A stretch of DNA of 64,000 bases, taken from NCBI GenBank assembly GCA_977016875.1, contig CDRNST010000091.1, forward strand, positions 2,108,001 through 2,172,000. The letters are read 5' to 3'. How positions within the stretch are numbered: the stretch's first letter is position 1; each line of letters opens with the position of its first letter. Shown one piece after another: positions 27,301 through 63,897 of this stretch. Both the position numbers and the translations under genes were made by a program. The stretch comes from Pavona decussata. Lineage: Eukaryota. The notes under the pieces are model-generated. The model was not told where the DNA came from. It saw only the letters and a list, made by a program, of their open reading frames with translations, and ran no database searches.

Positions 27301-30300
27301 TATCATTCATGAGGGAGATATGCACGCTTTGGTAATTACCAAGACCATCCTAGATGATGAGGCAGAATACAAGTGTGTGGCAGAGAACTCATTTGGACAG
27401 GTAGAATGTACAGCTGAACTGTTTGTTGATGAAGTCACCATTAAGCCCGAGTTTGTTAAAAAACTTAACCCACTTGAAGTGGAAGAACAAAGTGATGCCG
27501 TGTTCCAAGTACAAGTGCTTGGAAATCCAGAACCAGATGTTTTGTGGTTTAAGAACAATATCCCCATTCATCCAGGTGGCAGATATGAAGGGAAAAAAGT
27601 AGAAGATTTACACACACTCATCATCCATAAAACAACACCGAAAGATTCTGGTGAACTGAAATGCCAGGCTAGGAATGATGCTGGTAAAGCTGAAAGTGTT
27701 GCTCCACTGCTTGTGAAGCCAGTCACCGTAAAGGAAATGTTACAGGCTCCCTCATTCATTAAGAAACCTCACGATGCACATCTCATTGAGGGAGGTTCTG
27801 CTTCCTTTGAAGTCCAAGTGGATGGTACACCCAAGCCTACTGTCACATGGTATACTGAGGAAAATGAAGAAATACCGGAACGAGGCCACATCCGCTGTCT
27901 GCCTAATGGAACTTTAGTCATTGACCAAGCAGAACTTGATGATGAAGGCTTATATAAATGCATTGCTTCAAATAAGGCTGGAGACGTATCTTGCAAAGTG
28001 GAGGTGTTTGTGGATGAAGTCACCAGTAAAGTGGATGAGATTATTGAAGAAATTCCAGTTTCTCAGAAAGCTGTAGTAGAAAGTGAGATTCCCATTGAAG
28101 GTTTACTTGTAGAGCCAACAGAGAAAGCGACACCACCAGAAATAACAAGGAGGTTAAAAGATGTCAAAGTAACAGAGGGTGATACAGCACGATTTGAAGT
28201 AGAGGTCACTGGAAATCCCAAACCTTACGCTCATTGGGCAACTAATGGTGCAGAGATAACAGGAAACGAAGAAACAATTATGGAAACCAGCGGTGACACT
28301 TACAGGCTTATTTTGAAGGATGTTGTACCAGATGACGAAGGAGAGTACACATTCACGGCAAGAAATGAAGCTGGTAAAGTGTCGTGTACGGGAAAGCTGT
28401 CAGTCCAGGAGAAGATTGTAAAGCCATCTTTCTTGGATGCTCTCAAAGACATTGAAGTTACTGAAAACAGTGATGTGCGGCTGGAAGTTCGCGTGCAGGG
28501 GACGGAGCCTGATATTGAGTGGTACAGAAATGGTGTTGTCGTTGAGGAAACAACATCTCGAACAGAGTTCGTTGAGAATGAAGAGAGGGGAAGCTATGCA
28601 TATCTCATTTATGGTGCCACAACAGAAGACCAAGGCACCTATCGGTGTACAGCAGTAAATGAGGCTGGTGAAGCATCTTGTGAAGGAAAGTTGACTGTTA
28701 GAGAAAATGTTATTCCTCCAAGATTCATACAGCGCCTTGAAAACAAAAAGGCTGTTGAAGGGAGTGATGTGAACTTGGAAGTGGAGGTCAGTGGAAGGCC
28801 CAAACCAACTCTAAGGTGGCTGAAAGATGGTACTCACGTTGCTCCTGATAGTCATCTTCAAATAGACACAGAAGGCCGCATTCATACGCTGTCCATTACT
28901 CGGGCCAGACCATCTGATGGTGGCCAATACAGCTGTGTTGCATCCAACAGCGGTGGTAGAGATACCTGCTTTGCTAATCTTGAAGTTGAGAAAGAGATGC
29001 ATGCTCCAGAATTTGTTGTCCAGCCAGAGGGAGTACAGATTGTCGAGGGTGGCCAAGCTCAGTTCGAAGCAGTTGTTTCTGGTCTACCAGAACCAGAAAT
29101 TGAGTGGTCTAAAGATCGAAAGCTCATACGAGACAGTCATCGTTTCAAGCTCGAGTTTGATGGAAACAGATCAGTTCTTACCGTGAAGGGTGCAAAACAG
29201 ACTGATGATGGAGAATTCACTTGTACAGCAACAAACAAAGTGGGAAAAGTTTCTTGTACTGTAGAACTAGTTGTTGAAGAAGCAGTTGTTGCTCCTGAAT
29301 TTGTGAAGAAAATGAACAGTATTGAATTGTGTGAAGGCGACTTGGCCAGATTTGATATCCGTGTCAGTGGAACTCCTCAGCCAGAAGTACAGTGGTTCAA
29401 GAGTGACAAATCTTTGGAGGGAGATGAACGCTATGAGTTCCTCTCAGATGATGACATGCATTCTTTGGAGTTGTCAAATTGTCTTTTATCAGATGGTGGA
29501 ATTTACCGTTGCACTGCGTCAAATGAAGCTGGACAGACAACTTGCAGTGCAGAACTTATTGTCAGCGAGAAACCTATCCCTCCAGTGTTCACAGACGAAC
29601 CAACGTTTCCCGAGATGATGGCAGAGGGTAGCGATGTTGTGCTAGAGGCCACTGTTAGTGGGAAGCCTGTGCCAATTGTAGAATGGGTGAAAGATGATGC
29701 TACTTTACAGAACGGTAGCCATTTTAACATCAAGGCCGAGCATGGCAAACACACATTAACCATCTCAGGTGCTGGCCCTGATGACTCAGGAGTTTACAAA
29801 TGTGTTGCAAATAATCCAGCTGGATCATCCATTAGGACATTCAATGTAAACATCAGAGGTAAGAATTTTCTTTAAGCTTTTACCAGAAACTGTGTTAGTA
29901 CATCTCATTGACAATGTCAATAAGTTAAACAGAAATGGCACCTCTGCAGTCATTCTTGTGCCATGCTTGATTTCTGAACATAGCAGGATGGCATAGAGCC
30001 CTTGCGGTAATGGCAGTTAACCTTTCCAAAGTTCAAAACACGATTTGATATGAGAATTTCTAAACGTAGTTGTGGTGATGTGGTAGTCAAGCTGTTAGCG
30101 GGTGATGTGGAACGTCTGACCTTAAGGCTGGTGGTTCAAATCATGGTCTTTGCTATTAGGTCATTTGATTTGATGAGAAGCTTTGCTTCACATTGTCTCG
30201 CTTTGCCCAGCTGTAAACCAGCAAACAATTACGAAAATATAACAATGTGCAGGAGGTAACTAGTGATTGTCCGGCACTAACAGCTGACAATCATGACCCT

Positions 30301-33300
30301 TCTGCTTGTCCAATCTACTCAGTTAATTACGTGCAGACTTGATTTTACATTTTTACAGTGCATATGTGATGGAATCACACAAACCATCGAACTAGCCCCT
30401 TAAGTGTAGCCCTCTCTAGTGCTGGACTTTGGGAAGGCCTATTTCAGTATCATACGTGATAGTGCTAGTTAATTCACAATGACTGTATATCACTGTAACT
30501 GCTCCAACAAATATTAACAGCATCAAACTTTAAGCTTCAACTTCAAGGCCTATTACAGACTGCCTGTTCGCAATAACTGCTTGATACTAACAGTTCCACT
30601 GCAATTACATTCCTGTAGCAATCTATTTAAATAAATTGCTTTGATCAACGCCGGGGTATTGGAAACGGTAACTTTTCACTGCTGTGCACTTTTGTGAAAT
30701 GTGGATTAATTTTTTACTTTGTTCTAGCAGGATGTAGAAATAAGAATGCTCACTGTTTCTTACTGCAAGCAAGATAACTTTGTTAAGGCTAGTGAAAGAT
30801 GAAGATGCCCTTGAGTTTTGAAAAATGGTCATTACCTGTTTAGCTGGCTTGTGCTAATGTACTAATCAGTTACTGTGTTAGTTCATGTAAGCTTTAGCTA
30901 TACTGTAAAATTATTAAAGACTGTTTCTTGTAGGTTATTTAATTCTATTGTGTTCCTCAATGTGGCTTCTGGAATTTTTGTATCAAATAATGCTTCTTAA
31001 GTAAGGGATGTGTCCTTTTGTACAAAGGATGATGCTGTTTAATCTAAACTAATAGTGCTGGTAGTAGTATTCTAAAAGCACAATTAAATTGAAATTTTTG
31101 TGCTTTTTTTCTCACCTTTATCTCCTCCTACTTCTTTCTTGATCAATTGTGCCTTTCCGTGTTTTTATTTTAATGCAGACGCTAGCATAAGTTTTTGGGC
31201 ACCTTCTTAAATCTCAACTAATGCACTTGGCAGAAAGGAATTCATCGACTGTCTGAAGAAGCTGCCTTTATTGTAACGTGTGGGTATCATTTAAGGGTGT
31301 GTTACATGTATGCATCTTATTCAGGTCATTGGGTTCCGTTTTTAGTTCAATAATGCATTTCCTTGCTGTGAACTTTAAAACCAAGGTTGTCAAATCATCG
31401 AAGAAATATTGTTTCCTTGTAGCTGGTGTTTGTTATGTTTCTGAGTGCTGTGGTGTAGCTCAGCCAATGCCTATTGTTGGTAACACTGTAACACTGTACG
31501 TCATCTGCTGGCTGCCAGATTTAGCTATGCAGAAATGCTTTCATCATATTCTGGAAGAATTCCCTTACATTGTGCCTGGTTTTGATTGTGAATCTAAAAA
31601 TGCGCTCATACATACATCATACGTGGAGTTCTCAGGCAGTTGTTGGAGTGAGGTATGCAGATGAGAGCTTATCTTTGCTTCTTCAATGCGACCAACCTAG
31701 ATGCACATACATTATATGAAAGATGTTTCCCTCGTACTTCATACGTGCTCTCATGCAGTCACTAGAGTGAACTACGCAGATATCTATTTTCACATGTGGA
31801 AGACATTTGCTTGCATTTATTTTTGCATAGCTGGAAAGCCCGAAGGACGTGGACCTGAGTTTGTGAAGCCACTGTGTTCACCGCAAGCAGTTGAAAACTC
31901 TCCAGTTACTTTGGAATGTGAAGTGATTGGTTCCCCTGAAATATCAATTGAATGGCACAAGGATGATTCTCGAGTAAGGCAGACAACCCGTGTTCGCACA
32001 GAGTTTGATGGTAGAGTCTGTCGGTTAATATTATTACGTGCAGAACTAGATGATGAAGCAGATTACAAGTGCATTGCACGGAATGATTTTGGGATGGCAA
32101 CAACGGAGTGTGAACTTCTCATAGAGGAGGACCACTGTGCGCCCTTGTTTAAAAAGAAAGCAGAGAGTCAGACAATAAAAGTAGGTCAAGCTGTGACTTT
32201 TAGCGTTCTTGTAACTGGAAGTCCACCCCCTGAAGTTGACTGGTTTAAGAATGGAGCAGGGATAAATGATAACGGGAGATATGTGATTAAAGAAGATGTT
32301 GACCATGGGAAATTCTCTCTCACTGTTGCACAGGCCACGTGCGAAGATGGTGGAAGCTATAGGTGTGTGGCTTTCAATGAAGTTGGCGAGGCTTCTTGCA
32401 AGGCAAGTTTAGATGTTGTTCCTCTGTACAGGGAAATTGAACCAATTATTGAAGAATCTTTCAAGACCGAGATAGAAGTACCATTTAAGAACCAGTTCAA
32501 TGCAGATATGGCTGAACCATTTAGCATTCCTGTTGAACCACAGACTAAACTCGGAAAGAAGAAGCTTTCAGCAGCTAGAGAGGGCCCACTGTTTGAAGTC
32601 AAGGATGGTGAACCTCCCCACTTCCTTGAATTGCCTGAAGGATGCAGGCCCTTTGAAGTTAGTCCTGATGGTGATGTAAAACTGGAAGTAAGAGTCAGTG
32701 GCAAGCCCCATCCTGAAGCAAAGTGGCTAAAAGATGACAAGCCCATTCCAGAGAGTACTAATCTGTCATTTCACAGTAATAATGACAGGCACACATTGGT
32801 GATCAAGGGACCCACTCCAAGGGAAAAAGGAACGTACGTGTGTGTAGCAACAAATGAGTATGGAATTGCCACCAGAAGTTTTGATGTCAACATAGAAGGT
32901 TATGCAGACTGGGTGATGCCCTCTTTCTTAGAACATTTGGAAAGTCCTTTTCAAATTTCAGGTGACGGGAATGTGACCATGGAAGTTAAAGTTACGGGGA
33001 ATCCAACTCCAGAAATTGATTGGACACGGGATGATCAACAAATAGAGGCAAGGGATCGCATCCAAGTTTTCAGTAAAGGAGACAACGTTTATAGCTTGGT
33101 CATCAGAGGTGCCCAGCCGGAAGATGAAGGGAAGTATACTTGCACAGCAACCAACCCAGCTGGAAAAGCTATGAGAACATACACTCTTAACATAGGTGGA
33201 ACAAAAGCCAAACCAGTTGGTCCTGTAGAAGAAGCAGTTGCCCCTCCCAGAGTTTTGGAACTACCAGAACATGGACCATCATGTAATGTTACAGATGATG

Positions 33301-36300
33301 GAGATGTTAAGCTGGAGGTTCGTTTTAGTGGCCAGCCAGAGGTTGAGTGGTCAAAGGATGGAAATGCCATACAAGAGAGCAACCACTTTCAGATTCAGTC
33401 GAGGAATGCAGTACATACAATGGTTATTAAGGGTGCCACTCCAGATGACAAAGGTCTGTTTAAATGCACAGCTTCAAATAAAGCCGGAATGGCTTGGAAG
33501 ACATTCACGGTGGATTTTGACGGGAAGCAGGAAGGGCCGTCAGCAGGCGTGCCTTCCGACCTGGAGAGACCTTTGTTTGTTGAGGATGAATCTGTTGTAC
33601 CATTTGAAGTAACTGATGAAGGAAATGTCAAACTAGAAGCTAGAGTACAAGGCATGCCCCAGCCGAAAGTAGAGTGGGACAAAGATGAGGTTCCTCTGGA
33701 AAGTAATGAACATGTCATCATCAACGCCAAGGATGATCTGCATACCTTGGTGATTCAAAGTCCAACAGTAGATGACAAAGGAACATACACTCTTACTGCC
33801 AGAAATAAAGCTGGAGTTGGAACTCGTGCATTCAATGTTGAGATTGAAGGTAGCTCATGTATTTTATCGTCCTTGCTACGGTTTCGTTTTCTTCTAAGGA
33901 TATTTTGCGAGGGGGGTGGGGGAGGAGCAGATGAATCCGGGCTTTTAATGCTGTATGTTGTAGATTTCTTTGTTTTAAATGTGTTTGTTACTGTGTATAA
34001 TTGGGTCCTTCACTCTAATATGAGATCCATACTACCTACTTTCAGACGTGCCTACCATTACAACCATCAACCTCTAGTTAATCAGGCACTCGTCTTTTAA
34101 CAATAAATGGACTAACAGCTCTAACATAACTTACGTAACATGTTGCTTAGTTCAAGTGTCATCTTTACAATTGAACCTGCATGTCACAGGTGCAAAGCCG
34201 GTCAGCTTAGTGCCAGAAATCACTAAAGAACTGGAGGAAGTAGAGGTTCTGCGAGGACAACCCATCCTACTCGAATGTCACGTCTCTGGTGCAACTGATG
34301 CCCAAGTGAGATGGTTCTGTGATAACACCCTTATTACAGACGATGCACGAATATCAAGTTCATTTGATGGGACAGTTTGCACCCTGTCCATTGAACCATC
34401 AATACTGGATGATGAAGGAGAGTACATGTGTCAAATAGAGAATGACAAAGGTGTTGTGTCAACTGCTACAGAAGTACTTGTTGAACAAGGAATGGCACTC
34501 CCAATATTTAAAGACAGGATACAGAATCTGAATGTGACTGAAGGTGAGAATGCTTGCTTTGATGTCCGCGTTGTTGGAAACCCTGAACCAGTCGTGGAGT
34601 GGTTTAAAGATGGTGTGCAACTGGAAGATGAGGGTCGTGTGATGATTATAGATGATGTTGATGACAATGAGCCCGAATTATTCTCACTGGTAATTGAAAA
34701 TTGCAAGCCTTCTGATGCTGGGGAATACAAGTGTTTGGCCATGAATGAAGCTGGGAAAGACGCTTGCACTGCGCAGCTTGTTGTGAACTCTATTTCTGAC
34801 TCAACAAAGATTCCAGATGCTGCTGAAATCCCCTTGGTCTTCACTGAAGGCCAGGATGTTACTCTAAAGGCTTTAATGAGCAAGCATCTCACCATCACTT
34901 GGCTAAAGGATGATGAACCCATCAAACAGAGCAGTCACTATGATATTGATGCTAAAGAAGGTGTCCACACCCTGACAATTAACAATGTGACACCCGACGA
35001 CTCGGGGGTTTACAAGTGTGAAGCCACTGATGACAGCACAAGCACTTTCACTGTCACCATTAAAGGTAACTAACTAACACTAACTAGCAGTAACCAGCAC
35101 CACCTTAGCACTTGCGCATTTATGTTGTGTAGTAGTTTGCATTGGTAAGGAATTTAACCATTTTCTACACATTCAGTTATAAGATATGTTTCTCAACTAT
35201 ACAAATTGATAAAGAGAGAGAACCAACGTGTAGTTTGGTCTTTATGAGTATGGGACTACAGAGAATATATCTGACTCTTAGATGGCCGTTCAACAAATAC
35301 GTCTCAGATGCTGTATCCACTTAGATACAGGGACACTCATGGTCACTTGGCAACTTGTGACACATGGCTTGCCTTGAGTGTCCTTGTAGCTCAGAGGTTA
35401 GATCATCTGACTGGTAAGCAGGAGGTCATCTGTTTGACTGCTGTTGCGGACTCAGGTTTCACTTTGCATTTCTGAGCTCTTGACAAACTGAATGCAGTCT
35501 TCTAAAAATAAGGACGAAATTTTTGTGATGCCAGTTGCACTGTTGAAGGAAACTAGAACAAAGGTTTTACTGATCTTAATGTTTATGATTTTGTTTCTCC
35601 TGTTTCTCACGGCCGAACCAGACTAAGTAATCCTTATAACCTTAAAACTCCTGTATGTAAAACTAGCACTTTTCAGGCCTCTTACTTTAATCGTATTGTT
35701 AAGCTCTGGAACTATATCTGTAAATTATCACCCCCTACCAGTTTTTCAACTACTGCTTCCTTCCGCAACTTTGTTACTGAGCACATGTTTCACCTTTTGC
35801 AAAATCACTTTGACATATTCTATCCCTGTACCTGGTCAATTGTACGATCCTGCTCCTGCCATCCCTAGTTTTTTTTAGCGTCTTTTGGTTGTTTGTGTTT
35901 TAATTACTATTAATCATGGGAGGTGCCTCGCATGGGTCCTCGCGTCCCGTTCGCACCTGCCCTTTTGACCTGATCACTTTTCACGTATTTTTCATTTCTT
36001 TCTGGTTGTTTAATTTATTGTATTTAACATGTGTGATGGTCAATAAAGCTGTTAAAAAAAACAAAAACAAAAAAAAAAAAAACAAACAAACAATCCAGAA
36101 TTGGCAGTAGTGGAATATTGTTTCTGCTGGGGAAGCTTATTAAATCTCTCTATAAACTCGGTCACCTAGTTCTTTTAAATAAAAAAGAATTTAATTGGCT
36201 AAGAATCAGTGTTTCTGAGTTTAATTCATCTGCACAAACCTTATTATTAAACACCAAAACCAGTTTGTTCTTTATTTTACATGGACATTAGACTAATGAA

Positions 36301-42300: not shown

Positions 42301-44318
42301 GTGCCATTTACTTCTGAAATCGTTTTGACGATAGAGGTGGGCAGCAGGGTTTTCCAGTGTATAGGTGGCAAAGATTGTGAAGAAGTGGCTGTTGTGGTTT
42401 AATCCTCATGTGAAAGAATGTTGTCAACCATGAGAGCAGATGCAAAAAAAGTTAATGTTTTTTTTAAATGCTATGAACTGTATTTATCATCACGTGTGAT
42501 TATGGAATTCTCTTAAAGGGGCATTGACACGGCAATTTTGCTGTATTTTGATCAAAACTGCTTGAAATGTTTGACAAAAAGCCGTTTGTTATCATGAAAT
42601 TGCTCTTAGATCATCGGGAAGAAAATATTAACGAATTTCTCCAAGGAAGAACTAACTGTAATCAGGTTTTAGGGATTTCTCTATAATACACAAGAAGAAC
42701 AATTTTTTCAAGTTGCAATCCATTTTCACCCTAGCCATCCGCAGCCAAACATAATTAGTACTAGTTTCTGTGTGCTAGTAGGGTTATTGTTAACAAAACT
42801 GAGCCATTATTTTAACGATTCCACCGATTCTAATATGCTTTTTCGCCAATCAAAATGACAGGAAAATAGGTGACACTGCCCCTTTAAGATTGAAGTCAGG
42901 GCGGTGAGTGAATTCGCTCTTACTGAAAATGCTGGTTGTGATAATCAGCGGATGAGCAGTTGGGCATTTGGAATTCAGAACCAAAAAAAAGCTGATGGTT
43001 TGAGTTGCTGTCACAGTCTATGCGTAAAGGGGTTGTGTCTTATTGCTTTATTTTTGTTTTATTCACAGAACCATCAGATGACGAGAAAGTAATGTGAGTA
43101 ACTTGCGGCATTTCCTATTCAAGATTATATTCTTTCAATTGCACACCTATACCCTAAACCGTAACACATAAATACCCCCTCTGTTTTTCCCCCCTCTTTT
43201 CGGGACACTTAACAGGAGCTGTTTTTTCAATAGCAAGGGGGATGAGAGTGCAGCAAACCCGCAACTTTATTTGTATATTCCCATTTTAAGATGAGCATTT
43301 TTTCAGTCGAGCTCTGGCTGCCTGAAACTTGCGATAGTGCATGAAGGCACCAGGTTGCTATGGAGGGGGGGGGGGGGGGTATAACTTCAAGAGAAATTGC
43401 TTTTAAATTAGCCAAATGCCTTATGCCTAACCTATGATGCAAGCAACAGTTCACGTATTTGTCAGCAACAGGAGAGCTTCATGTTTTCGTTAAGGCCTGC
43501 TTACACATGCAATTTTGTACGCAGTCGCTCAAGCTCGTAAATCACAAGTGTAAACTAGTGGCAATTTCAGTGTGACCTGGGTTTAATTTGTCGTTGCGAT
43601 ATTGCAAAGGCATGTTTGAAACCATCCGGCAAACACGGCAAATATTGCAATTGAATCATAGCCATATTGCACTGAAATTGCGGCTAGTTCAAACATCGCC
43701 TCTGTAAACGCCCCTTTAGAGTGCGAGATATTCTTTCTCTTATCAGACTAAAGAAGCCAGTCCTGGTTCAGAAATTTGCCGATCAGAGCATCACAGAGGG
43801 GGAAAAGCTTGAGCTGCGGATCAAATACATCGGTTCAAAACCAGTTACTGTGACGTGGTACAGAGACGATGAAGTGATACAGGCTGACGATCGCTCTAAA
43901 TTGCTCTCTGATGATGACATCCATGTACTTCGAGTAGACCCAGTAGAAATAGATGATGAGGCTATTTACAAATGTATTGTCAAGAATCAAGCAGGAAAAG
44001 ACCAATGTGAAGCTGAGATCTTGGTTGAAGGTACTGTATCTCATATTTAAGGACGGTGCCCCGTAACACAGGAGTATTTTTTCACAGTTGCGGGAAAGCA
44101 GTTGTTAGTATGGGCTACTGTAATCCAGAAAGAAAGGTGGCGGTAGCGGGAAATTCTTTAGAGATAATTAAGCAGTGATATTGTATAAAGCACCAAAATA
44201 CAAAGGAATGTATGGCGTTTCTTCAAAATTGAAGCTTTATTATCTGTGAAAAATGCATGGTTACCCCAAATTTTCTTTTTGGAAACCAAGAGCACTTGCT
44301 AAGTTCTGCTTTCTCTGC

Positions 44319-44356
<38 letters not shown>

Positions 44357-56300: not shown

Positions 56301-59300
56301 CCATGACAACAAGTGTGCTTGCTTTGTCCGCTTTTTTAAGGGTTAAGTAATTGCGTCGTTTGATAGCGTTTAATGTTCGACGTTCTTTGCGTGACAAGTT
56401 TGGTTTTGGATTGGCTATTTGTATCTCCGCAATTTGTTTTTTGACCTCTTCAAGAGATGTTTCTATAGACAGTGTGACTGATGGTTGAATTAGTGGATCC
56501 CAGTTTGGTTTGATATACACTGTAGAAGGGATGAATTGTTTATTTTGCCCGTGGAAGATGTATCTGAGGCACATTCGTCTTGCAAAATGTCTGAAATTCT
56601 GCAAGAGTTTGTGTCGGACTTATTTTTGTCTCCATAACGAATGAATGTAATTCAACGTGTGAGGTCCCCAACACTTCTCGCCGGCCTGTAGGTGCCACGT
56701 GCAGCAAGCTGCAAAGAGCTATGACGAGAGCGAGGCAGTGCTACAGAATGATGTCATTTATCATATCCTATAATTACTGGCGGATTTAGGACGCAACTTT
56801 GAACTTTTTGATGTGACGACAACGTCGGACTTGAGCTAGAAAAATCCAAAAATTGCTTTACAGTTTGTCGGGATGTGCCGCCTAATTTCGACATCAAAAT
56901 AAAGTTCGATGTTAGCGCGTATTCCTTAAAAACCTTTGAAGTTGGTTTGTATCGGTATGTTGTCGAAACCCATGCACATTGTAAAGGTGAAAGTTGATTC
57001 ATGTTGTCGGACGTAGTTGGATATTGATTTACATTGCTTGGTGATGGTGGTCGTTGCTTGATCCTTGTTAGCCTGCAGTGTAAAAGCTAATAACTTCTTT
57101 TCTTTATTCCAAATTTCTCTTTACAGCCAAAAAACCTACAGGAACAGCACCAGAAATCACAAAACCTCTGGAAAATGTCACCGTTGTTGAGGGTGAACCA
57201 GCAACCCTTGAGTGCGAGCTGAAGGGAGAACCACAGCCCAACATTGAATGGTTCAGAGATAGTGAGCAGGTCAAGGAGTCCAAGCGCATTAGTCTGCAAT
57301 TCGATGGCAAGCTTTGTTCTTTGTCTTTAAAACCGAGTGAGCTTGATGATGAAGGAGAGTACAAGTGTGTTGCACGTAACGAACTCGGAAGTGCGTCGAG
57401 CACAGCGGAACTACTTGTGAATGAAAGCAACAGGAAACCAGAATTTGTAGAGAAGCTTAAAAACATCAGTGTTCAGCCTGGAGAGGAAGCGAGGTTCAAT
57501 GTGCGGGTTATTGGCTCACCACCGCCAGAAGTTGATTGGTTCAAAGGAAAAGAAAGCCTTGAAGATGAGGGTCGCTTTCTTATGGTGGATGATGTAGAGG
57601 AAGACCTGTTTTCGTTGATTATTGAAGATGCCCAACCAAGTGACAGTGGTGAGTATGAGTGCGTTGCATTCAATGAAGTTGGCGAAGTCTCATGCAAGGG
57701 AAACCTGGTTGTTGAGGAAACTCTCGTTGCACCCCAAGTTATCGATGAAGTAGAAGGTGCGGCACCCATGCTTGAAGAAGCAATCATGGCACCCAAGTTT
57801 GCTGAAGAAGGGGAAAGTGCACCAGTTGTGATCGAAGAAGGAGGTGATCTCAGTTTAAGTGCAGATGTCAAGGGACGGCCAACACCAGATGTTCAATGGT
57901 CGAAGGATGGTCAGGACTTAAAGAGCAGTGAACACTTGGATGTTGGTGAGGAGGATGGCAAACACACACTGTTGGTCAAAGGCGCTACTCCTGAAGACTC
58001 TGGGGTTTACAAGTGTCAGGCTACCAGCAAGGGAGGTGTGGCTGAAAGAACGTTTGACGTACAAGTGATAGGTACCTTTATGTTTTGTTGTTTGAAGTTC
58101 GATAGCGTACAAATGTCGCAACGTTTCTAAACTTACCACTAAGGAAAACAGTATTGGTGGGTAGAATGCGTAGTAGTTTTCACCCGAATTACCAAACGTT
58201 ATGATTTCACAGGCTCAAGAACAACTTCTACATTCACTGACACTCTGGTACCACCGTGTACCGGAAAATAGACAGTACAACAGAATAGCACTCATTTTAA
58301 ATGCCCACACACTTGAGGGATTTTTACAGGGTCAGAGATACGCCTGTGGAATTTGCAGTAATTGAGTCTGGCGTCTTCCCTTCCCCTATGCATCAACCGT
58401 AAGTAGGAATAAGTCAAGCGAAGGTAGTCAAGGTACTTTTAGTAATGGTTAATTTTCATGCCTGGTTTTAAAACTGCAGCTAAGAAACCAGAAGGGACAG
58501 AGCCAGTATTCACAGAACCTGTTCAACCAGTCGAGGTCAAGGAAGGCAGTGATGCCAGACTACAATGCACTGTCGAAGCGGAACCCAAACCCAATGTTGA
58601 ATGGTTGAAGAATGGCGTTCGCGTGAAAGAAAACCGACGGGTGAAAGTAGAAATTGACGGGAAAGCAACTTCACTGACGATCAAAGAAACCAGGACGCCG
58701 GACCAAGGAGAATACAAATGTGTAGCGACAAATGTTGTAGGGTCATCGTCCTGTGCTGCCACCTTAACAGTCAAGGCCATTACCAAGCCAGACTTCAAAG
58801 AGAAGATCAAGACAAGTGAGGTTATGGAGGGAGACACTGCGAGGTTTGATGCTCGAGTGACTGGGTATCCTGTGCCCGAGGTGGAGTGGTTTAGAGCAAC
58901 AACCAAGCTGAAAAATGATGACAGGATTGAAGTGACACAGGACAAAGATGACGATGTTTACTCACTTGTAATCAGTGACGCTAAGCGGGAAGATGCTGGA
59001 ATGTACAAATGCGTGGCTTCAAATGAAGGAGGTAACTGACGCAATATTACGTTACAGTCACCCTACGTCACGCGTGACCAGTATTTCCGAGAGTGAAATG
59101 AACATACGAATTCCTCTTTGTTAATGTCCGGCATTTGAATGGAATATTGAAAATTTCTTTGGAAATCATTCCGAAAAAGACGCGTTAAGTGGAAAAAAAT
59201 TTAAAATATTCGGTAAACATTTGTGCTTAATACTGTGATGATAAAATGAAAGAATGAAAAAAATCATAGCTTTATACGGTCAATAAACAAGGGAACTTTC

Positions 59301-62300
59301 TACGTGAACTCTGAAATCTCGCTGGCGATGTTCAAAACTGACATATAAATTTCAAAACTTTGTCACGCGTGACGTAGGTTCACTGTACCACTTTCGCTTC
59401 TTATCGGATGCTAACAGAACTTAAAGAGTAAGCAATTGTCAAACGTTTGATGGAAGCGAAATACATGTATTTGCTGGTCTTTTGACTTACACAATGTTCG
59501 AAGCTATCGAAACTCAGTTGGCATGGTATTAGATTACGCACAAATCCTCTGTTGGCGTCAGACGAGAGGCCATCGTATTAACAAGCTGTTAGACTGTTTT
59601 CAGTCCCCTGTGTTTTTATGTGATTTTCTAGATAGTATATGTTTTCCATTGGACTGCAATCATCTTGGTTTGTTGGGGACAGTGTAACCTGGGGAGAGGG
59701 CCAGAACTACCAAGGGGGCCCCTAGTCAGGTTGCTTAGCGTGGCGGAGGAGGGGAGACAACTAAAATATCTCTCTCCCCACGTCGAGCCCTCTTTGGCGC
59801 GCTCCCCAAGTTGCGCTCGTCAGGATGGCGGCAGTGCGATCGAAGCATACTACTACTACACTGTAAACAGCCCAACAAGCTGTTTTCTATTGTGTTTCTA
59901 GGTAGGCAAAATCTCCATTGCTGTTAACCCTTTCTGTTGTAGGTAAAAACACATGCCGAGCTGACCTCACCGTGAAGGAGAGGCTGTTTGCCCCTGAATT
60001 CGCTGAGGAGCAGTCGGATGCCCCCATAACAGTGTCAGAAGGTGGAGAAGTCAGCCTGGATTTAACAGTCAATGGTAAACCCAAACCTGATGTGAAATGG
60101 TACAAGGATGACAGACCACTGCGTGAGAGTAACAGGCTGGACATCAAGGCGCGAGGAGACAAGTACTCTGTGGTGATTCTCGGGATCAAACCAGACGATT
60201 CTGGAGTGTACAAGTGTGAAGCAAAGAGCAAGATGGGTACCGTGACCAGGACATTTGATGTCAGAGTAGCAGGTATTTACAAAGTTGTTCCGTAATCTGT
60301 GACTACACGGCTGGTAACAGTTACAAAACAGCATTTCCTTCGTTTCGTCTTAAAGTTCTAATGGTCTTGTTTGAAATGACCATCGCCGTGTTCATGCACA
60401 CGTCCTACAGTTTTAGTCTCCATTGTTGTATTCACATTTTACCAAGGTCATTCTTAATTAACTAGAGAGACTTGATATCTCCAACCCAAGATGCCGGATA
60501 CTCATACATGTAATACTGTCAACTCCCATTGACTGTTATTCTCACATACTTGCAGAAGATTGAAACCAGAAGCATACCAAGTTTTAGTTGGAAAGGACAA
60601 TTTTTCAAAATACTCTTCTTTTACTGAGTTGAGGATTTTATTCACTGACTCGACTTGCGACTTCCATTTTTTGAGTCAAGATTTTTTTCTTCTTATTAAT
60701 ATTATTCTTTATTTACGCACAGATTCTAATTGACAAAATGTTGAACTTACTTAACCTCAAACACCTGTGCAATTCATCGTCCTTAATAAGATTTCAAAAA
60801 CGGAGGGGGAGAGTTGGAGCGGGGGTGGGGTGGTACTTTTTTTTTTGGGAGTGAAAATTGTAAGTCCCGTAATTCTATGCGTGACTGTTGTATTTCTCAT
60901 TTCATTTCTTAGCTGAGAAGCCAGCTGGAACGGCACCACAGTTTACGCAGCCTTTAGAATCAATGGAAGTCTCAGAAGGGACAACTGTTAAACTCACATG
61001 CAGCTTGAAAGGAGTACCTCAACCAACTATTCAATGGCTCAAAGATGGAAAGCCCCTGAAAACTAGCATAAGGGTGAAGGACGAGTTTGATGGGGACGTC
61101 GCCGCTTTGGTGTTTTCCGAAGTAGAGCTTGACGATGAAGGTGATTACAAGTGCGTTGCGCAAAATGAGTTGGGTTCTGCATCTTGTACTGCGGAGCTTC
61201 TTGTGAACGAAGCTGGTGTGAAGCCTGAATTCACTGAACCAATGAAAGACATTGAGGTAGCTGTTGACGACGAAGGAAGGTTTGATGTGCGCGTATCTGG
61301 CGTGCCTAAGCCATCGGTGCAGTGGTTCAAGGGAACAAAGAAGATCGAAGATGAAGGCAAGTTCTTGTTGATGGACGATGAAGAAGAAGAAGACCTGTTT
61401 TCTCTTGTCATTGACCAAGTTGCCTCTGATGATGTCGGCACGTACACTTGCAAAGCGGCTAATGAATCTGGGGAGGTGAGCTGCAAAGCTGAACTACAAA
61501 TGCAAGAGAAGATGGCAGCTCCTGAATTTGCTGATCAAGAGGAAAGCGGCCCGATCACTGCTCAAGAAGGAGACGACGTAACCCTTAATGTTACTGTGAA
61601 AGGAAAGCCAAGCCCACAGATCGAGTGGCACAAGGACGATAAGCGTCTGAGGAAGACCAGCCGTCTGGATGTCAAAGAACGGGGAGATAAGTTCTCTTTG
61701 GTTATCTTAAAGGTGACACCTGACGATTCTGGTTTGTACAAGTGTGTGGCAAGTAGTAAGGCTGGAAGTGTTACAAGAACATTTGAAGTCAACATTGAAG
61801 GTATGTCCCAAAGGGTCATCAACCCATGCAATTTGTGATGCGATCTTAAGGACGGTTTTTAAGCACTATTCACAATCATTTCACTCTGACTTTGAAAGGC
61901 TGTGTAGTGGAAGAATGTTGCTTGGTATGTGAAGAAAAAGTGAACATGTCGGAAGACAATTGTGTGCACTCCGCTGCACTTAAGTCTTAAATTTTTCCAA
62001 AAACTATATATTCATACAACCATTGTATGTCCTTTTGATACTGCTTCCTTCTAGAGAGAGTGGAAAGTTCCCTTTGAAAGGTTGCTCCAGCTACTGTTCT
62101 TTAACACTTTTTGTTTGTGGGTTTTTTTGCGGGGGGTAGGGAGGGGGATATATTGTCAAACCTGTTGGATAAGTAATTACCGTGTAGAAAGAAAATTTTG
62201 CGGGAGTTTTATTTTGCGGATTGGCGAGTTTTTGTGGTTTGCGGGAACAAATATTTGCGGTTCGCGATGACTAAAAGTTTTGCTGGGAATTAATTTTTGC

Positions 62301-63897
62301 GATGCTCTGTTCAAATAGCAGAGCATTTAAGTGGAAGAAACCTTAATATTTTTAACTTTTATTGTACGGTATGTTGAGTCACAGTTCACTCTACTTACAT
62401 ATTAGAGACATATCACTGGAGTACCTTACTGCGTAAAGGGACTGAACAACATCAAAACAAAACAAAAAGCCTATCTGGCCTAAGATGCACAACCGTATGA
62501 ATGTTCGAATTACCGTAGCTGAAACCTTTCTAGGCATACAGAGGGGCTTTCGAGTGAAAGATGTAGCAAGTATACAACTTTGAGACCTAACTGGGAGAGG
62601 TCTGCTAAAATGCAAAACTTTGCCCTACAGTAACACAATGAGGCAGACTCAGCCGATGATATAAACACTCTTGTTCAGTTAGTTTCAAGTGTTGAAATAA
62701 CTTCTGTGCAGGCCGCTGCAGAAGCGCCAATAGAGCATGGTTGGTCTGTTTATAAGTCCAATGTATATCGCCCCAGTGGCGCAGATCTATTAAAAGTGGA
62801 GTTTTTAATTTGACTAGAGGGAGTTAATTTTTGCGGCGTTTTATTTTGCCGGTGTTTATTTCTGCGGGAACTAATTTTTGCGGATCGGGGTCAATCCGCA
62901 AAATCCGCAAAAATTATAACTTGCAAAATTTTCATGCTACACGGTACCAGCAATGTTATCAACCACCACTTGGGAGTAATAATATTTGTAAAATTTCTTT
63001 AAGGTAAAAAAGCAAAAAAACCCAAAGGAAAAGCACCAGAATTTACACAACCTTTGAAAGCAGTACAAGTTGTAGAGGGCAATCCTGTCAGGCTAAAATG
63101 CCGCATGGTGGGCACACCTTTACCTACTGCCGAATGGTTCAAGAACGGAACTGAAGTCAAACTTAGCAGTAGAATCAAAGCTGGCATCATTGGCGACATG
63201 TGTCAACTGTCTTTCACTGAGACACAAGTGGATGACAGTGGAGATTACAAATGCGTGGTTCGCAATGAAGTCGGATCAGCGTCTACCGAAGGTGAACTCA
63301 CTGTCACTAAGCCTGTCTCGGCACCTGAATTTAAGTTGAAACTGAAAAATGTTAAAGCAAGTGAGGGAGAACAGGCTCAGTTTGATGTGAAGGCGGCTGG
63401 AAATCCTGAGCCAAACATTGAGTGGTTCCGTGGAACTCAAGCGATCAGCAACGAAGGACGTTTTACGTTGAAATCTGGTGAAGCGGACGAACAGTACTCT
63501 TTAGTCATCGATGATACAATTCTAGACGATGCAGGTACTTATAAATGCGTTGCGTCTAACTCGGCAGGAAAAGCAACTTGTCGGGGAGAACTTGAAGTCA
63601 GCGGAAAACTTACGGCTCCAGAATTTGTCGACGAGCTGGATGAAGCTCCAATAACTGTTACAGAGGGCGAGGAAGTGTCTTTGCCTGTTACCATTCGTGG
63701 AAAACCAGCTCCGGATGTTGAGTGGTACAAAGATGAACTTAGTGTTAGAAAGTCATCAACTATTACCACGTTTGTAAAAGGAGATCAATACACATTGTAC
63801 ATTTACAGCGCTAAGCCTGCTGATTCCGGTGTGTACAAGTGTGTGGCGAAGAGTAAAATGGGCACAGCAACACGGACGTTTAACATCAAAATAGAAG
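2991..63897 (+). CDS. Giant spectrin-repeat / DH(RhoGEF-like) / SH3 / 60x I-set Ig protein (Trio/Kalirin-like head, titin/UNC-89/obscurin-like tail); partial at both ends, 47 exons, ~7,900 aa in window
   Basis: All exons are GT-AG with consistent phases. The summed length is 23,695 nt in one open frame. Motifs: spectrin-type helices with W, DH (LIESEEKYLDDL...IFVNSEDIFFFH...RPVERVLEY), SH3 (ALQDF...WVPSSVL) and I-set Ig (P.F...G.P.P.V.W.K....D.G.Y.C.A.N..G). Confidence 0.93.
4076..4195 (+). CDS. Exon 2, spectrin repeat first half
   Basis: cacag|ATC...AAG|gtagat; ITKWLNEDAEDYL...YGDSAASTQVLLDEHAKFE; 120 nt. Confidence 0.9.
4216..4449. mobile_element. MITE with (G)GCCCCAGTTGTTCAAA termini, probably Harbinger-type
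   Basis: ctggccccagttgttcaaa ... ttttaacaactgggaccag inverted ends; internal tggata/tatcca palindromes. Confidence 0.7.
4471..4627. mobile_element. Degenerate Tc1/mariner-type MITE
   Basis: cagtggaac...gctccactg|ta termini. Confidence 0.6.
5281..5472 (+). CDS. Exon 3, spectrin repeat second half (not in ORF track)
   Basis: ttag|GAA...CGA|gtaagt; EKEEAGHRLARETEKLVHGDF...VDERKKLLLETLAYY; 192 nt. Confidence 0.9.
6594..6848 (+). CDS. Exon 4, spectrin-like
   Basis: ttgcag|GCT...GAT|gtaaga; 255 nt, phase 0-0. Confidence 0.85.
7063..7185 (+). CDS. Exon 5, spectrin repeat first half
   Basis: ctgcag|GTG...GAG|gtaaga; VYNWIKNVGDDFL...MGDSVKTSQEFLYLH; 123 nt. Confidence 0.9.
7471..7787. mobile_element. 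Harbinger-like MITE with ~45-bp TIRs
   Basis: gctgttacactgggcaatttttcttgcaacttgtc matches the reverse complement at 7743-7787; taa left flank, ttt(a) right flank. Confidence 0.8.
8712..8882 (+). CDS. Exon 6, spectrin repeat second half
   Basis: ttgcag|CAT...CTG|gtgagt; DLWSIFTARLEYRLTLGKMYFDFH; 171 nt. Confidence 0.9.
8982..9120. mobile_element. Short hairpin MITE
   Basis: gggtgcatggaataaggccctcagtgactt ... aagtcacttggggcttttatacaggcaccc. Confidence 0.65.
9552..9725 (+). CDS. Exon 7, spectrin-like (not in ORF track)
   Basis: ctacag|CTT...AAA|gtaagt; LFGKLDELTNQL...SQALLDELRK; 174 nt. Confidence 0.88.
9807..10044. mobile_element. Harbinger-like MITE
   Basis: agggtgctctccatttgtcagaa ... ttctagcaaatgtaaaagcactct with TA-rich flanks. 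Confidence 0.65.
10551..10730 (+). CDS. Exon 8, spectrin-like
   Basis: ttccaag|GAA...GAG|gtgagt; LGQLWTLREEQL...FVQFEKDTRE; 180 nt. Confidence 0.88.
11043..11165 (+). CDS. Exon 9, spectrin repeat first half (not in ORF track)
   Basis: gtcag|GTC...AGG|gtaagt; VILWIKEQSDTFF...LRRFKDAAR; 123 nt. Confidence 0.88.
11261..12028. mobile_element. Non-autonomous TTAA-targeting DNA transposon (Kolobok-like)
   Basis: ttaa|GGTGGCCGAACACAGTTT ... AAACTGTATTCGGCCACC|ataa. Confidence 0.8.
12842..13033 (+). CDS. Exon 10, spectrin repeat second half
   Basis: cctcag|CGC...AAG|gtgagt; 192 nt. Confidence 0.9.
13477..13803 (+). CDS. Exon 11, spectrin repeat
   Basis: tcgcag|CTT...ACG|gtaggt; EWRSLWEHHKDKLEESVRLCEFE; 327 nt. 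Confidence 0.9.
14201..14323 (+). CDS. Exon 12, spectrin repeat first half (not in ORF track)
   Basis: ttgtag|GTC...AAG|gtagga; VNLTIEEHTRELL...FGVTLLDAVTLLQESDAFLESVK; 123 nt. Confidence 0.88.
15165..15356 (+). CDS. Exon 13, spectrin repeat second half
   Basis: tcacag|CCT...CAG|gtctgc; MESRWQRFLSRMEDHRTMLEASIEFH; 192 nt. Confidence 0.9.
15806..15950 (+). mobile_element. tRNA-derived SINE, copy 1
   Basis: ggcttgatagttcagttggcagagcactgcaccggtat...gggtttgaatcccattcaagcc (degenerate A/B boxes) with a tail shared with the 20409 copy. Confidence 0.8.
16161..16484 (+). CDS. Exon 14, last spectrin-like repeat
   Basis: ttgcag|GCT...AAG|gtgaac; 324 nt. Confidence 0.9.
16858..17690 (+). CDS. Exon 15, E/T/S/V/P/K-rich low-complexity linker
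   Basis: cttag|GCA...CC|gtaagt; 833 nt, phase 0-2. Confidence 0.87.
17811..17954. mobile_element. Degenerate Tc1/mariner-type MITE
   Basis: ta|caattaaccctcgctataac ... gagtttactg|ta. Confidence 0.55.
18074..18431 (+). CDS. Exon 16, linker plus first helix of DH domain
   Basis: ttag|A TTT...GAG|gtatgg; QRMNDITGKLIESEEKYLDDLRSLVE; phase 2-0. Confidence 0.88.
18904..19001 (+). CDS. Exon 17, DH domain
   Basis: tgcag|GAT...AAA GT|gtatgt; DYIYQL...IFVNSEDIFFFHK; phase 0-2. Confidence 0.85.
19201..19430 (+). mobile_element. Old SINE remnant
   Basis: degenerate tRNA-like head gggagc...gcagtgagagtact and tail ttcctccataaaaacaaacatt; recognised by eye only. Confidence 0.4.
19493..19562 (+). CDS. 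Exon 18, DH domain (not in ORF track)
   Basis: ttacag|T ATC...AGG|gtaaga; IFYDELSKCRGIPSDVGQVFTKR; phase 2-0. Confidence 0.85.
20409..20560 (+). mobile_element. tRNA-derived SINE, copy 2
   Basis: ctcccagttggcttgatagc...agaggtcatgggtttgaatcctgttcaagcctgaattt, homologous to 15806. Confidence 0.8.
20761..20850 (+). CDS. Exon 19, DH domain (not in ORF track)
   Basis: ctaaaag|GAA...AAG|gtaaga; ENELDRYITFCDGKSDSANFIESHPKDFFK. Confidence 0.85.
21373..21513 (+). CDS. Exon 20, DH domain CR3 (not in ORF track)
   Basis: ctgtag|AAC...GAG|gtactg; PIEELLDRPVERVLEYRAYLTDLLQCARKAGVDTHDLE. Confidence 0.87.
22113..22481. mobile_element. TA-flanked MITE containing a nested Penelope-type palindromic fragment (22281-22400)
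   Basis: ta|ctgtaaa ... actacgg|ta; internal tttttggaagg repeats; gacgttgcgagcattagcc...gtcaga / ctctgac...ctcgaaacatcagc. Confidence 0.55.
22603..22655 (+). CDS. Exon 21, last DH helix (not in ORF track)
   Basis: long (ttct)n tract, tttcag|GCT...CA|gtaagt; AGKEVVDRLWAEITQQT; phase 0-2, needed for frame. Confidence 0.82.
23714..24372 (+). CDS. Exon 22, SH3 domain plus Ig 1
   Basis: tttcag|G TTT...GAA T|gtaagg; ELCVALQDF...VLVLDR...EVWVPSSVL, then APVFIVPLE...AELNVE; phase 2-1. Confidence 0.9.
24621..24970 (+). mobile_element. 5'-truncated Penelope-like retroelement 3' end
   Basis: encodes KLNKQCDSIHAKLFV*, like the end of GIY-YIG PLE ORFs; followed by cttgaaaatGACCGTcggACGGTCgaaacgtcg. Confidence 0.65.
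25023..25080 (+). CDS. Exon 23, 58-nt linker exon (not in ORF track)
   Basis: tttcag|CT...AT|gtaaga; SVESEGEPEVEEPQITVIK; phase 1-2, required to join exons 22 and 24. Confidence 0.85.
25465..29858 (+). CDS. Exon 24, 4,394-nt giant exon with 14 tandem I-set Ig domains
   Basis: ttgcag|A GCC...AGA G|gtaaga; ORF 25394-29875. Confidence 0.95.
31831..33849 (+). CDS. Exon 25, six Ig domains (A-B-C-C-C-C)
   Basis: gcatag|CT...GAA G|gtagct; 2,019 nt, phase 1-1. Confidence 0.93.
34190..35065 (+). CDS. Exon 26, three-Ig unit
   Basis: tcacag|GT...AAA G|gtaact; 876 nt. Confidence 0.92.
35385..35500 (+). mobile_element. Degenerate tRNA-derived SINE (second family)
   Basis: gtagctcagaggttagatcatctgactggt...ggaggtcatctgtttgactgctg. 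Confidence 0.5.
35570..36092 (+). mobile_element. 5'-truncated CR1-type LINE 3' end with poly(A) tail
   Basis: encodes GRTRLSNPYNLKTPVCKTSTFQASYFNRIVKLWN (CR1 ORF2 C-terminal SfFnR...lWN motif); AATAAA at 36042 and A-rich tail at 36055-36092. Confidence 0.75.
36647..37549 (+). CDS. Exon 27, three-Ig unit
   Basis: ttttag|AC...GAG G|gtgagt; 903 nt. Confidence 0.92.
37650..38800. repeat. ~100-bp degenerate tandem repeat, interrupted by a transposon
   Basis: recurring accttgtacagc-aataaacagc-ccacaggaaagtactg-ctttcatt-aatggtcacactttaggatttc-acagactcaaaa; related fragment at ~48340-48420. Confidence 0.75.
38058..38732. mobile_element. Kolobok-like non-autonomous transposon with ~125-bp TIRs and TTAA TSD
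   Basis: ttaa|GGTTACCCAGTACCTTCAGAGGTGTCTCGCG ... CACCTCTGAAGGTACCGGGTGGCC|ttaa; 12-bp duplication in the right TIR. Confidence 0.9.
39132..39431 (+). CDS. Exon 28, single Ig
   Basis: tcacag|CC...ACA G|gtatgg; 300 nt. Confidence 0.92.
39929..40116 (+). CDS. Exon 29, PEVK-like spacer
   Basis: ttatag|AA...CAG|gtattt; EEEQLKPAEEEVVVE...KEIPESKPTFDEVQ; phase 1-0. Confidence 0.85.
40526..40907 (+). CDS. Exon 30, spacer plus single Ig
   Basis: ttatag|CTT...GAG G|gtatgt; phase 0-1. Confidence 0.9.
41144..41338. mobile_element. Harbinger-like MITE with CAG TSD
   Basis: cag|GGTCCAGTTGTTCGAAAGCC ... GGCTTTGAACAACTGAGCC|cag. Confidence 0.8.
41475..41525 (+). CDS. Exon 31, candidate 51-nt symmetric microexon (ELTRSRGSGVDITIVPS)
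   Basis: tgacag|AA...TCT G|gtaaca; open, phase 1-1; weak pyrimidine tract; optional for frame. Confidence 0.5.
41988..42296 (+). CDS. Exon 32, single Ig
   Basis: ttacag|AA...GAA G|gtgtgt; 309 nt. Confidence 0.9.
42517..42883. mobile_element. Kolobok-like MITE with TTAA TSD
   Basis: ttaa|AGGGGCATTGACAC ... GTGACACTGCCCCT|ttaa. Confidence 0.85.
43069..43093 (+). CDS. Exon 33, 25-nt frame-bridging microexon (EPSDDEKV)
   Basis: ttcacag|AA...AT|gtgagt; phase 1-2, matching the phase-2 acceptor at 43747. Confidence 0.8.
43494..43714. mobile_element. Degenerate Harbinger-like MITE
   Basis: taa|ggcctgcttacac ... tgtaaacgcccc|ttta. Confidence 0.5.
43747..44030 (+). CDS. Exon 34, single Ig
   Basis: tatcag|A CTA...GAA G|gtactg; phase 2-1. 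Confidence 0.9.
44051..44430. mobile_element. Kolobok-like MITE with TTAA TSD
   Basis: ttaa|GGACGGTGCC ... GGCACCATCC|ttaa. Confidence 0.85.
44995..45233. mobile_element. Harbinger-like MITE with CAG TSD; same family as 41144-41338, opposite orientation
   Basis: cag|GGCCCAGTTGTTCAAAGCCC ... GGCTTTCGAACAACCCGGCC|cag. Confidence 0.82.
45424..45462 (+). CDS. Exon 35, 39-nt symmetric acidic microexon (DKPEEEETDSGTN)
   Basis: ttacag|AT...AAC G|gtaata; phase 1-1. Confidence 0.72.
46340..46962 (+). CDS. Exon 36, Ig A+B and start of C
   Basis: aatcag|AT...GAG|gtttgt; phase 1-0. Confidence 0.9.
47223..47475 (+). CDS. Exon 37, remainder of Ig C
   Basis: tatcag|GTG...GAA G|gtaagt; phase 0-1. Confidence 0.9.
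47619..48261. mobile_element. Kolobok-like non-autonomous transposon with TTAA TSD
   Basis: ttaa|GGTGATTCCA ... TGGAATCACC|ttaa. Confidence 0.85.
48493..49167 (+). CDS. Exon 38, two Ig domains (B-C)
   Basis: acatag|GG...CAA G|gtatga; 675 nt. Confidence 0.9.
49198..49465. mobile_element. MITE fragment (ta-ccgt terminus, ataagccc repeats)
   Basis: taccgtgaaaatccgaata; repeated ataagc(c/t) motifs; only one end visible. Confidence 0.4.
49973..50872 (+). CDS. Exon 39, three-Ig unit
   Basis: acacag|AA...CAA G|gtgcct; 900 nt. Confidence 0.9.
51275..52159 (+). CDS. Exon 40, three-Ig unit
   Basis: ttgaag|GC...GCA G|gtatgg; 885 nt. Confidence 0.9.
52708..53595 (+). CDS. Exon 41, three-Ig unit (acidic type)
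   Basis: gtgcag|CT...ACA G|gtattg; 888 nt. Confidence 0.92.
54089..54970 (+). CDS. Exon 42, three-Ig unit (basic type)
   Basis: ttgcag|CA...GCA G|gtattt; 882 nt. Confidence 0.92.
55391..57030. mobile_element. Foldback element with ~160-bp imperfect inverted arms (55391-55549 / 56866-57030)
   Basis: aacatcggactttattttgatgtcgaaattag and acgtccgacaacaggaatcaactttca recur as reverse complements. Confidence 0.75.
55560..56700 (-). mobile_element. Decayed, internally deleted Penelope-like retroelement
   Basis: ORF 56296-56604 NLSRKERRTLNAIKRR...KKADKASTLVVMD (pre-RT region); downstream minus-strand remnants VKGEALRFVR and PNLKHVLMEKWHLIQNQPFLREIFKESPLISFKKGKSL; RT core missing. Confidence 0.75.
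57127..58071 (+). CDS. Exon 43, three-Ig unit (acidic type) with duplicated linker
   Basis: ttacag|CC...ATA G|gtacct; 945 nt. Confidence 0.92.
58480..59031 (+). CDS. Exon 44, first part of a split three-Ig unit (basic type)
   Basis: ctgcag|CT...GGA G|gtaact; 552 nt. Confidence 0.88.
59055..59385. mobile_element. Tc1/mariner-type MITE with TA TSD
   Basis: ta|CAGTCACCCTACGTCACGCGTGAC ... GTCACGCGTGACGTAGGTTCACTG|ta. Confidence 0.85.
59590..59874. mobile_element. MITE with 9-bp TSD (MULE-like)
   Basis: acaagctgt|TAGACTGTTTTCAGT ... ACTGTAAACAGCCCA|acaagctgt. Confidence 0.75.
59943..60272 (+). CDS. Exon 45, second part of the split three-Ig unit
   Basis: ttgtag|GT AAA AAC...GCA G|gtattt; 330 nt; 552+330=882, the length of paralogous exon 42. 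Confidence 0.9.
60913..61800 (+). CDS. Exon 46, three-Ig unit (acidic type)
   Basis: tcttag|CT...GAA G|gtatgt; 888 nt. Confidence 0.92.
62180..62944. mobile_element. TA-flanked non-autonomous DNA transposon
   Basis: ta|CCGTGTAGAAAGAAAATTTTGC ... GCAAAATTTTCATGCTACACGG|ta; subterminal ttttgcgg repeats. Confidence 0.85.
63004..63897 (+). CDS. Exon 47, three-Ig unit (basic type); gene continues beyond window
   Basis: tttaag|GT...GAA G|gttagt; 894 nt. Confidence 0.9.

Follow-up and report, generated by a model that had tools for sequence, protein, structure and literature searches.

An Ig-only super-repeat of A-B-(C) exon cassettes in a probable connectitin gene of the cnidarian Pavona decussata

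What purpose a long row of immunoglobulin (Ig) domains that recur in threes may serve is the question raised by a stretch of 64,000 nucleotides (nt) from Pavona decussata (contig CDRNST010000091.1, positions 2,108,001 to 2,172,000 of the forward strand), which is called the window here. A first-pass annotation of this DNA had described exon cassettes that each encode three Ig domains, A, B and C, and had proposed that the array could be a molecular ruler matched to the myosin crowns of the thick filament. We analysed the exon structure, the domain classes, the relatives, the predicted fold and the transcripts of this array. It is built from an A-B pair, to which a C domain is usually added, and would be the Ig-only super-repeat of the central segment of connectitin. 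It was made by duplication of the A-B-(C) block and probably acts as an extended flexible rod or tether.

The array lies within a series of long stop-free stretches that reach from 23.7 kb to the end of the window, are all on the plus strand and translate to tandem Ig domains. Inspection of the splice sites resolved 21 exons, E0 to E20. The A-B-(C) array extends from 28,991 to 63,897 on the plus strand and continues with two exons beyond the window end. It has 16 units, 14 complete A-B-C units and the variant units E2 and E11, and the last ten, from E12 to E22, run without interruption. Nine of the complete units are single exons: E3 (34190 to 35065, 876 nt), E4 (36647 to 37549, 903 nt), E12 (49973 to 50872, 900 nt), E13 (51275 to 52159, 885 nt), E14 (52708 to 53595, 888 nt), E15 (54089 to 54970, 882 nt), E16 (57127 to 58071, 945 nt), E19 (60913 to 61800, 888 nt) and E20 (63004 to 63897, 894 nt). 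All nine are bordered by AG and GT and flanked on either side by phase-1 introns, and their lengths are multiples of three, in line with the phase 1-1 units of 876-945 nt that had been described. The motifs given for the start and the end of the cassettes are both present, but the G that closes the end motif is the GT of the intron read through. At the true junction, a codon for Ala or Gly arises from a G and the two opening bases of the exon that follows. Two further A-B-C units carry an extra intron, E9 with E10 (876 nt in total) and E17 with E18 (882 nt in total). The two cassettes past the window, also on the plus strand, are found at L025:664-1542 (window 64664-65542, 879 nt) and L025:1985-2860 (window 65985-66860, 876 nt), and only single-Ig exons follow downstream of them.

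The number of Ig domains was determined with a profile that was built from the window's own domains, which belong to the I-set class of Pfam. Exactly 60 I-set domains were found in the window, the number that had been claimed, and 48 of them lie between 29010 and 63897. As the exons were handled singly, only part of domain B of E17/E18 entered the analysis.

The distinctness of the three domain classes was examined with 36 domains that were labelled by their place in the cassette. Within a class their mean identity was 0.44, between classes it was 0.30, and for domains of unlike class that share an exon it was 0.31. None of 10,000 label shuffles reached the observed class contrast. When all 60 domains were sorted by average-linkage clustering, as the first-pass annotation had suggested, and cut into six groups, three clusters and three single-domain groups were obtained, and all 36 labelled domains were placed correctly by their position in the cassette. 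Hidden Markov models (HMMs) of the three classes were built from 12 units and applied to the units held out. They assigned A, B and C to the unit at the end of E1 with margins of 14, 22 and 42 bits, A, B, C, C, C, C to E2, B and C to E11, and A, B and C to the cassettes beyond the window. No clear class was given by the same HMMs to the domains that lie beyond the array, namely E0, E1.1 to E1.11 and those of the single-Ig exons farther downstream, and none of them was a C.

A maximum-likelihood tree was calculated with 142 domains from the window, its downstream flank and two contigs of more distant genomes, L033 and L034. Class B was a clade (39 of 39, support 87), and so was class C with 30 domains plus E2.4 (support 95), in which the four C domains of E2 group together. 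Class A was nearly a clade, with 43 of 44 domains and ten weak A-like domains (support 81). The clades mix the three genomes. The clustering, the shuffles, the held-out HMMs and the tree agree on the three distinguishable classes. Their diagnostic residues were taken from 79 cassettes, paralogs and orthologs: class A has a B-strand Cys together with an F- and a G-strand Cys, LDDEG and ELL, class B has FDV, WFKG and EDEGRF, and class C has TP.DSG, SK.G and TF.V and is devoid of the B-strand Cys. The missing Cys had been taken as a mark of class C; it is missing there, but it is missing from class B as well.

The age of the duplications was apparent from the orthologs. A word-index search with E13 returned 187 open frames, and all of the 120 listed were A-B-C. 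E12, E13, E14, E15, E16, E19 and E21 each have their own orthologs with 66-96% identity (16 orthologous open frames in the case of E12), compared with 45-64% identity to the next-best cassette of the window. This shows that the duplications are old and that the copies are not homogenising. An exception to the divergence of the cassettes is a tract of 345 bp with 92% DNA identity between 54637-54981, at the 3' end of E15, and 59939-60283, at E18. It begins 4 nt before the E18 acceptor and extends 11 nt into the following intron, and from its sequence it looks like a gene conversion or a partial duplication.

The contig L035 of a related genome shares the exon grammar in full, with both of the split units and with the B-C exon. 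The ratio of nonsynonymous to synonymous substitution rates (dN/dS) against L035 was 0.121, 0.115 and 0.114 for classes A, B and C, respectively, at a dS of about 0.9, so that all three positions are under purifying selection. In the more distant contigs L033, L034 and L036, the classes are kept and the triplet is not. L036 begins with ABB and continues with ABC eight times, in L033 AB and ABC exons alternate, and L034 has five AB exons in a row, followed by ABC exons. The breadth within Cnidaria is that of these four ENA contigs. Within L033:6445-20233 the alternating AB/ABC pairs score nearly equally in succession, which points to a higher-order repeat of five Ig domains with a recent amplification in this lineage. 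Among about 180 class transitions in five genomes, 57 were A-to-B steps, only one of them with an intron, and 13 were B-to-A steps. A-to-C was not observed, and all 39 C-to-A steps contained an intron. Taken together, the transition counts show that the conserved unit is an obligate A-B pair with an optional C.

More remote relatives were searched with the cassette profile in 1.84 billion representative proteins. The top named relatives were nematode UNC-89, fox obscurin and a crinoid titin-like protein. With the class HMMs no A-B-C periodicity was detected in the 150 best profile matches, except for four short fragments that look, by their sequence, like relatives of this gene. The longest listed match had 7,754 residues; no listed match had more than two A-B-C units, and none was a full-length cnidarian connectitin. 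A feature search in the ESM Atlas yielded generic Ig or titin-fragment clusters only and gave no lead to a taxon or family.

The fold of the unit was predicted with AlphaFold for E13 from an alignment of 79 sequences. The model shows three I-set domains with a mean predicted local distance difference test (pLDDT) of 94.7 and a predicted template modelling score (pTM) of 0.69. The pLDDT was 97 at the A-B junction, on a par with the domains themselves, versus 82 at the B-C linker, the weakest of the internal stretches. The sequence of the A-B junction, ELLVNE..KPEF, hardly varies, always has the same length and is conserved far above the average of the domains. The B-C linker had inserts of 20-63 residues in 11 of 11 E16-type sequences; in E16 itself the insert has 20 residues, and those of its orthologs are at the same place. 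The top Foldseek match of the model was titin I67-I69, with 290 columns, a root-mean-square deviation (rmsd) of 7.4 Å and a template modelling (TM) score of 0.48. Among solved structures, titin I65-I70 was the best match for the profiles of A, B and C each. Horseshoe-type Ig arrangements were ruled out by the fold comparison with an rmsd of more than 20 Å, and because of this poor fit the model is read as an extended rod. Modules of the kettin type, with Ig domains and long linkers, were ruled out as well, since the linkers are too short. An extended rod of three Ig domains makes a span of roughly 12-13 nm plausible. Of the 13-14 nm that had been estimated for the triplet, the order of length is therefore plausible from the model, but the match to 14.3 nm is not supported.

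The transcription of the array was followed in RNA contigs of four runs from four studies. The exons were covered and the introns were at zero depth. GT..AG joints were present at 50872/51275, 52159/52708 and 53595/54089, connecting E12 to E13, E13 to E14 and E14 to E15, and loose ends of contigs tie the 3' end of E11 to E12 and E15 to E16. The exon borders from E11 to E16 are thereby confirmed, and all these cassettes are included in the RNA. A skipping joint was not seen for E11 to E16 in the contigs of the four runs, which drop rare forms. It had been claimed that any cassette can be skipped in frame; the phases allow this, but no such event was seen.

The contig of run X5 is 7.4 kb long, starts at E4 and ends at E15, and exceeds the sum of the exons by 282 nt. 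The extra sequence lies between E4 and E12. Most of it is explained by a candidate non-Ig linker exon of 188 nt at 39929-40116 on the plus strand, with a phase-1 acceptor and the phase-0 donor CAG/GTATTT, and 94 nt are unplaced. The encoded linker consists to 59% of P, E, V or K and has 69% protein identity to its counterpart in L035, with an indel of one codon. Judged by its composition, a PEVK-like linker within the Ig array would fit a spring. The same X5 contig joins 53595 to 54109 via 11 other letters, where the window has 20 bases (54089-54108). From this, another individual seems to have an in-frame length difference of 9 nt in its C-to-A linker, where E15 starts.

The array is not uniform in its upstream part, which was assigned with the same profile and class HMMs; all features are on the plus strand. 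The first A-B-C unit (28991 to 29858, Ig domains E1.12 to E1.14) is the end of the 4,392-nt exon E1 (25467-29858) and has a phase-1 donor. This single 4.4-kb exon holds 14 Ig domains, and the first 11 of them, encoded by 25467-28990, have no clear class and are set apart by two E/P/V/K-rich linkers. In another assembly, the open frame P0174 with 1,442 residues has the same layout and ends with A-b-C, so the large exon is conserved too. The variant unit E2 (31831 to 33849) has six I-set domains and encodes A, B, a linker of about 62 residues rich in E and P, and four C-type domains. Each of these four (32600-33849) follows a linker of 10-20 residues; class C alone was expanded locally. E3 and E4 were assigned by splice sites, the Ig profile, the clustering and the class HMMs, and E20 by splice sites and clustering.

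The array is then interrupted from 39132 to 44030 by the single-Ig exons E5 (39132-39431), E6 (40584-40907), E7 (41988-42296) and E8 (43722-44030). They encode single A-like I-set domains with weak class margins, and the acceptors of E6 and E8 are the least certain in this break. Their L035 orthologs have 73-92% identity at a dN/dS of 0.05-0.14. In the following unit (46340 to 47475) a phase-0 intron separates B from C, with A and B in E9 (46340-46962) and C in E10 (47223-47475). E11 (48493 to 49167) encodes a linker, B and C and is without A. The second split unit (58480 to 60272) has a phase-1 intron inside B. Its exon E17 (58480-59031) encodes A and most of B, and E18 (59943-60272) encodes the last B strand and C. 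Both splits are shared by L035.

The identity of the host gene was sought in the sequences on both sides of the array. Upstream in the window, spectrin-type repeats were detected with PF25075 (E 3.4e-12), PF00435 (E 3.6e-6) and, weakly, PF24915. RhoGEF fragments (E 0.0047 and 0.033) and SH3_KALRN (E 0.049) scored below the Pfam cut-offs, because each exon was scanned alone. The weak Kalirin-type SH3 is in the same exon as the first Ig domain. A PH domain was not found in the upstream exons of the window when these were scanned one at a time. A kinase frame of 590 residues is located 60 kb downstream on the same strand. Its Pkinase match (E 1.8e-75) lies at C91:2232014-2232778 (L031:14-778), and no other protein-kinase match in the 602-Mb genome is better. 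Ig exons lie between the array and this kinase, which is presumably the first kinase of the array's gene.

Connectitin is the fused SESTD1-CCDC141-titin-type gene of non-bilaterians, with SEC14 at the N-terminus and more than ten spectrin repeats (PMC12198301). Hanashima et al. (2025, PMC12198301) deal with connectitin in cnidarians and placozoans and describe the cnidarian genes as carrying SEC14, spectrin repeats, Ig domains in large number, RhoGEF/PH/SH3 and either two or three kinases. The order at this locus appears to be that of connectitin, with spectrin repeats, weakly matching RhoGEF and SH3 parts, many Ig domains and a kinase presumably of the same gene, and numerous Ig domains, a trait of connectitin, are evident from the 60 I-set domains of the window and more downstream. 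By the match of these surroundings to the published architecture, the array is probably the middle poly-Ig stretch of a connectitin from a cnidarian, a gene related to titin and to obscurin/UNC-89. Neither a three-Ig super-repeat nor its classes or exon structure are mentioned in that paper, which presents no more than domain cartoons and a phylogeny.

The three-fold periodicity is primarily the footprint of block duplication. Repeated tandem duplication of an exon block with the obligate A-B pair and usually C is close to certain as the history of the array, and after the old duplications each cassette has been kept separately under purifying selection. Mechanically, we infer that A and B with their short linker of invariant length form a stiff pair and that the variable B-to-C linker is a hinge, with C joined to the next A by a conserved Pro-rich linker that would span the splice junction. 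A redox-dependent stiffening by the Cys triad of class A (B, F and G strands) is conceivable; such a triad is known in Ig domains of the titin I-band (PMC5766482). The symmetric phase-1 exons could permit tuning of the length by exon skipping, although none was seen in the RNA contigs. The whole segment may work like the Ig-only super-repeats of the titin I-band spring. By this analogy, an elastic I-band-like rod segment and not a myosin-matched ruler is the most likely role.

The elastic middle-Ig segment of titin is composed of Ig-only super-repeats of 6 and 10 domains, the number of which varies between vertebrate lineages (PMC12241362). Like this segment, the array is a tandem of I-set domains without Fn3 in which the domains of the same position in different units are mutually closest, and both have undergone block duplication with a copy number that varies between lineages. 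Symmetric phase-1 exons are common to the two, and in titin, too, the Cys triad is present in a subset of the domains. The period is different, however, with three domains (two in AB units) and not 6 or 10. Here a whole unit is encoded per exon, whereas titin has one Ig per exon; the cnidarian gene also encodes spectrin repeats, DH and SH3 parts, and no unit-skipping joint was found in the RNA contigs of E11-E16. Obscurin/UNC-89 likewise combines SH3 and DH with an Ig array and kinases and provides the top named giants for the cassette profile.

Several points weigh against the array being a spring or tether. The highest-scoring named relatives, UNC-89 and obscurin, are M-line scaffolds, and the Ig domains of human obscurin reportedly have no super-repeat (PMC2196875). 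With the pTM of the model, confidence in how the domains are oriented to each other is only moderate. The lack of exon skipping in the RNA counts in the same direction, with the limit given above for rare forms. The conservation of the classes could also be explained by descent and ordinary purifying selection without a position-specific function.

The last of these points can be taken as a full explanation, in which the classes are only the lineages of one duplicated three-domain block and have no position-specific role. Block duplication predicts that the classes are clades, as was found; selection is uniform across them, and both the copy number and the AB/ABC composition vary between lineages. 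This explanation is nevertheless rather improbable, since the order was never scrambled in the roughly 180 transitions of the five genomes, with no A-to-C step and one intron within the A-B pair, and since conservation at the A-B junction is well above the domain average. A somewhat better, yet still low, chance is given to a periodic ligand scaffold without the precision of a ruler, where the A-B pair or the whole unit docks a repeated partner, for example actin or a filament or membrane-skeleton protein. Kettin-type linkers between Ig domains have about 35 residues. Such linkers are absent here, and dN/dS is alike for the three classes and the single-Ig exons, which both argue against a scaffold. 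For a scaffold speak the obligate A-B pair, with a linker invariant in length and nearly so in sequence, and class-specific residues that persist in paralogs and orthologs (F23, G40, D46 and G48 in B; S71, S80, K81, T88, F89 and V91 in C). Titin Ig pairs and kettin Ig-linker modules are said to work in this way, which would be an analogy, and several titin interactions use adjacent Ig pairs (PMC2196875). Any ligand of the array would be a putative one.

Far less probable is the thick-filament ruler, in which each A-B-C unit spans one crown level of myosin at 14.3-14.5 nm and the array sets or reads the register of the thick filament. The position-specific classes under purifying selection, the ten uninterrupted units from E12 to E22 and the rod-like shape of the predicted model would suit a ruler, and with a length of about 13 nm an extended three-Ig tandem comes fairly close to 14.3 nm. 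On the thick filament, however, the titin domains are spaced at 3.98 nm, or 43 nm per 11 domains, so that three domains take about 11.9 nm and 14.3 nm would require about 3.6 domains (PMC7427331). The length of the unit is not fixed (876-945 nt, and inserts in the B-to-C linker range from 20 to 63 residues), L033 has AB-only and ABC exons in alternation, L034 has five AB-only exons in succession, and the register is broken by E2, E5-E8 and E11. In addition, the closest solved relatives are the elastic I-band Ig domains of titin, and the array itself is Ig-only, with no Fn3 match on its contig among the 150 best of the genome. The variable linkers, the mixing of AB and ABC, the I-band match and the missing Fn3 thus disfavour a fixed ruler of 14.3 nm, and this part of the first-pass annotation was not upheld.

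Hardly more probable than the ruler is a periodic docking of the A-B-(C) module to filaments in a pre-bilaterian titin relative, with the module providing an Ig-only register along a myosin or actin filament. The 7- and 11-domain super-repeats of the titin A-band likewise show position-specific conservation over many tandem units, but they include Fn3 and have a fixed domain count, in contrast to the variable linkers and composition and the absence of Fn3 here. If it were true, a docking-module register would predate the titin Ig/Fn3 A-band super-repeats and be independent of them, and the ten units could be a length or register template in the muscle cells of cnidarians.

In conclusion, the array is probably a spring or tether segment, and the three-Ig super-repeat of connectitin would be a variant of the known Ig-only super-repeats. 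In vertebrates, the titin I-band spring consists of Ig-only super-repeats; the stiffness of muscle is set by their copy number, which varies from lineage to lineage. The predicted unit of about 295 residues, which folds with high confidence in the model, may be a test case for the effects of linkers and disulfides on poly-Ig mechanics. The array also adds to the picture of a gene family that received its name as late as 2025. A conserved super-repeat of different size in a cnidarian relative of titin and obscurin, with a period of two or three, one unit per exon, a stiff A-B pair and a titin-like Cys triad, would show that a block-wise, position-specific Ig architecture predates the bilaterians.

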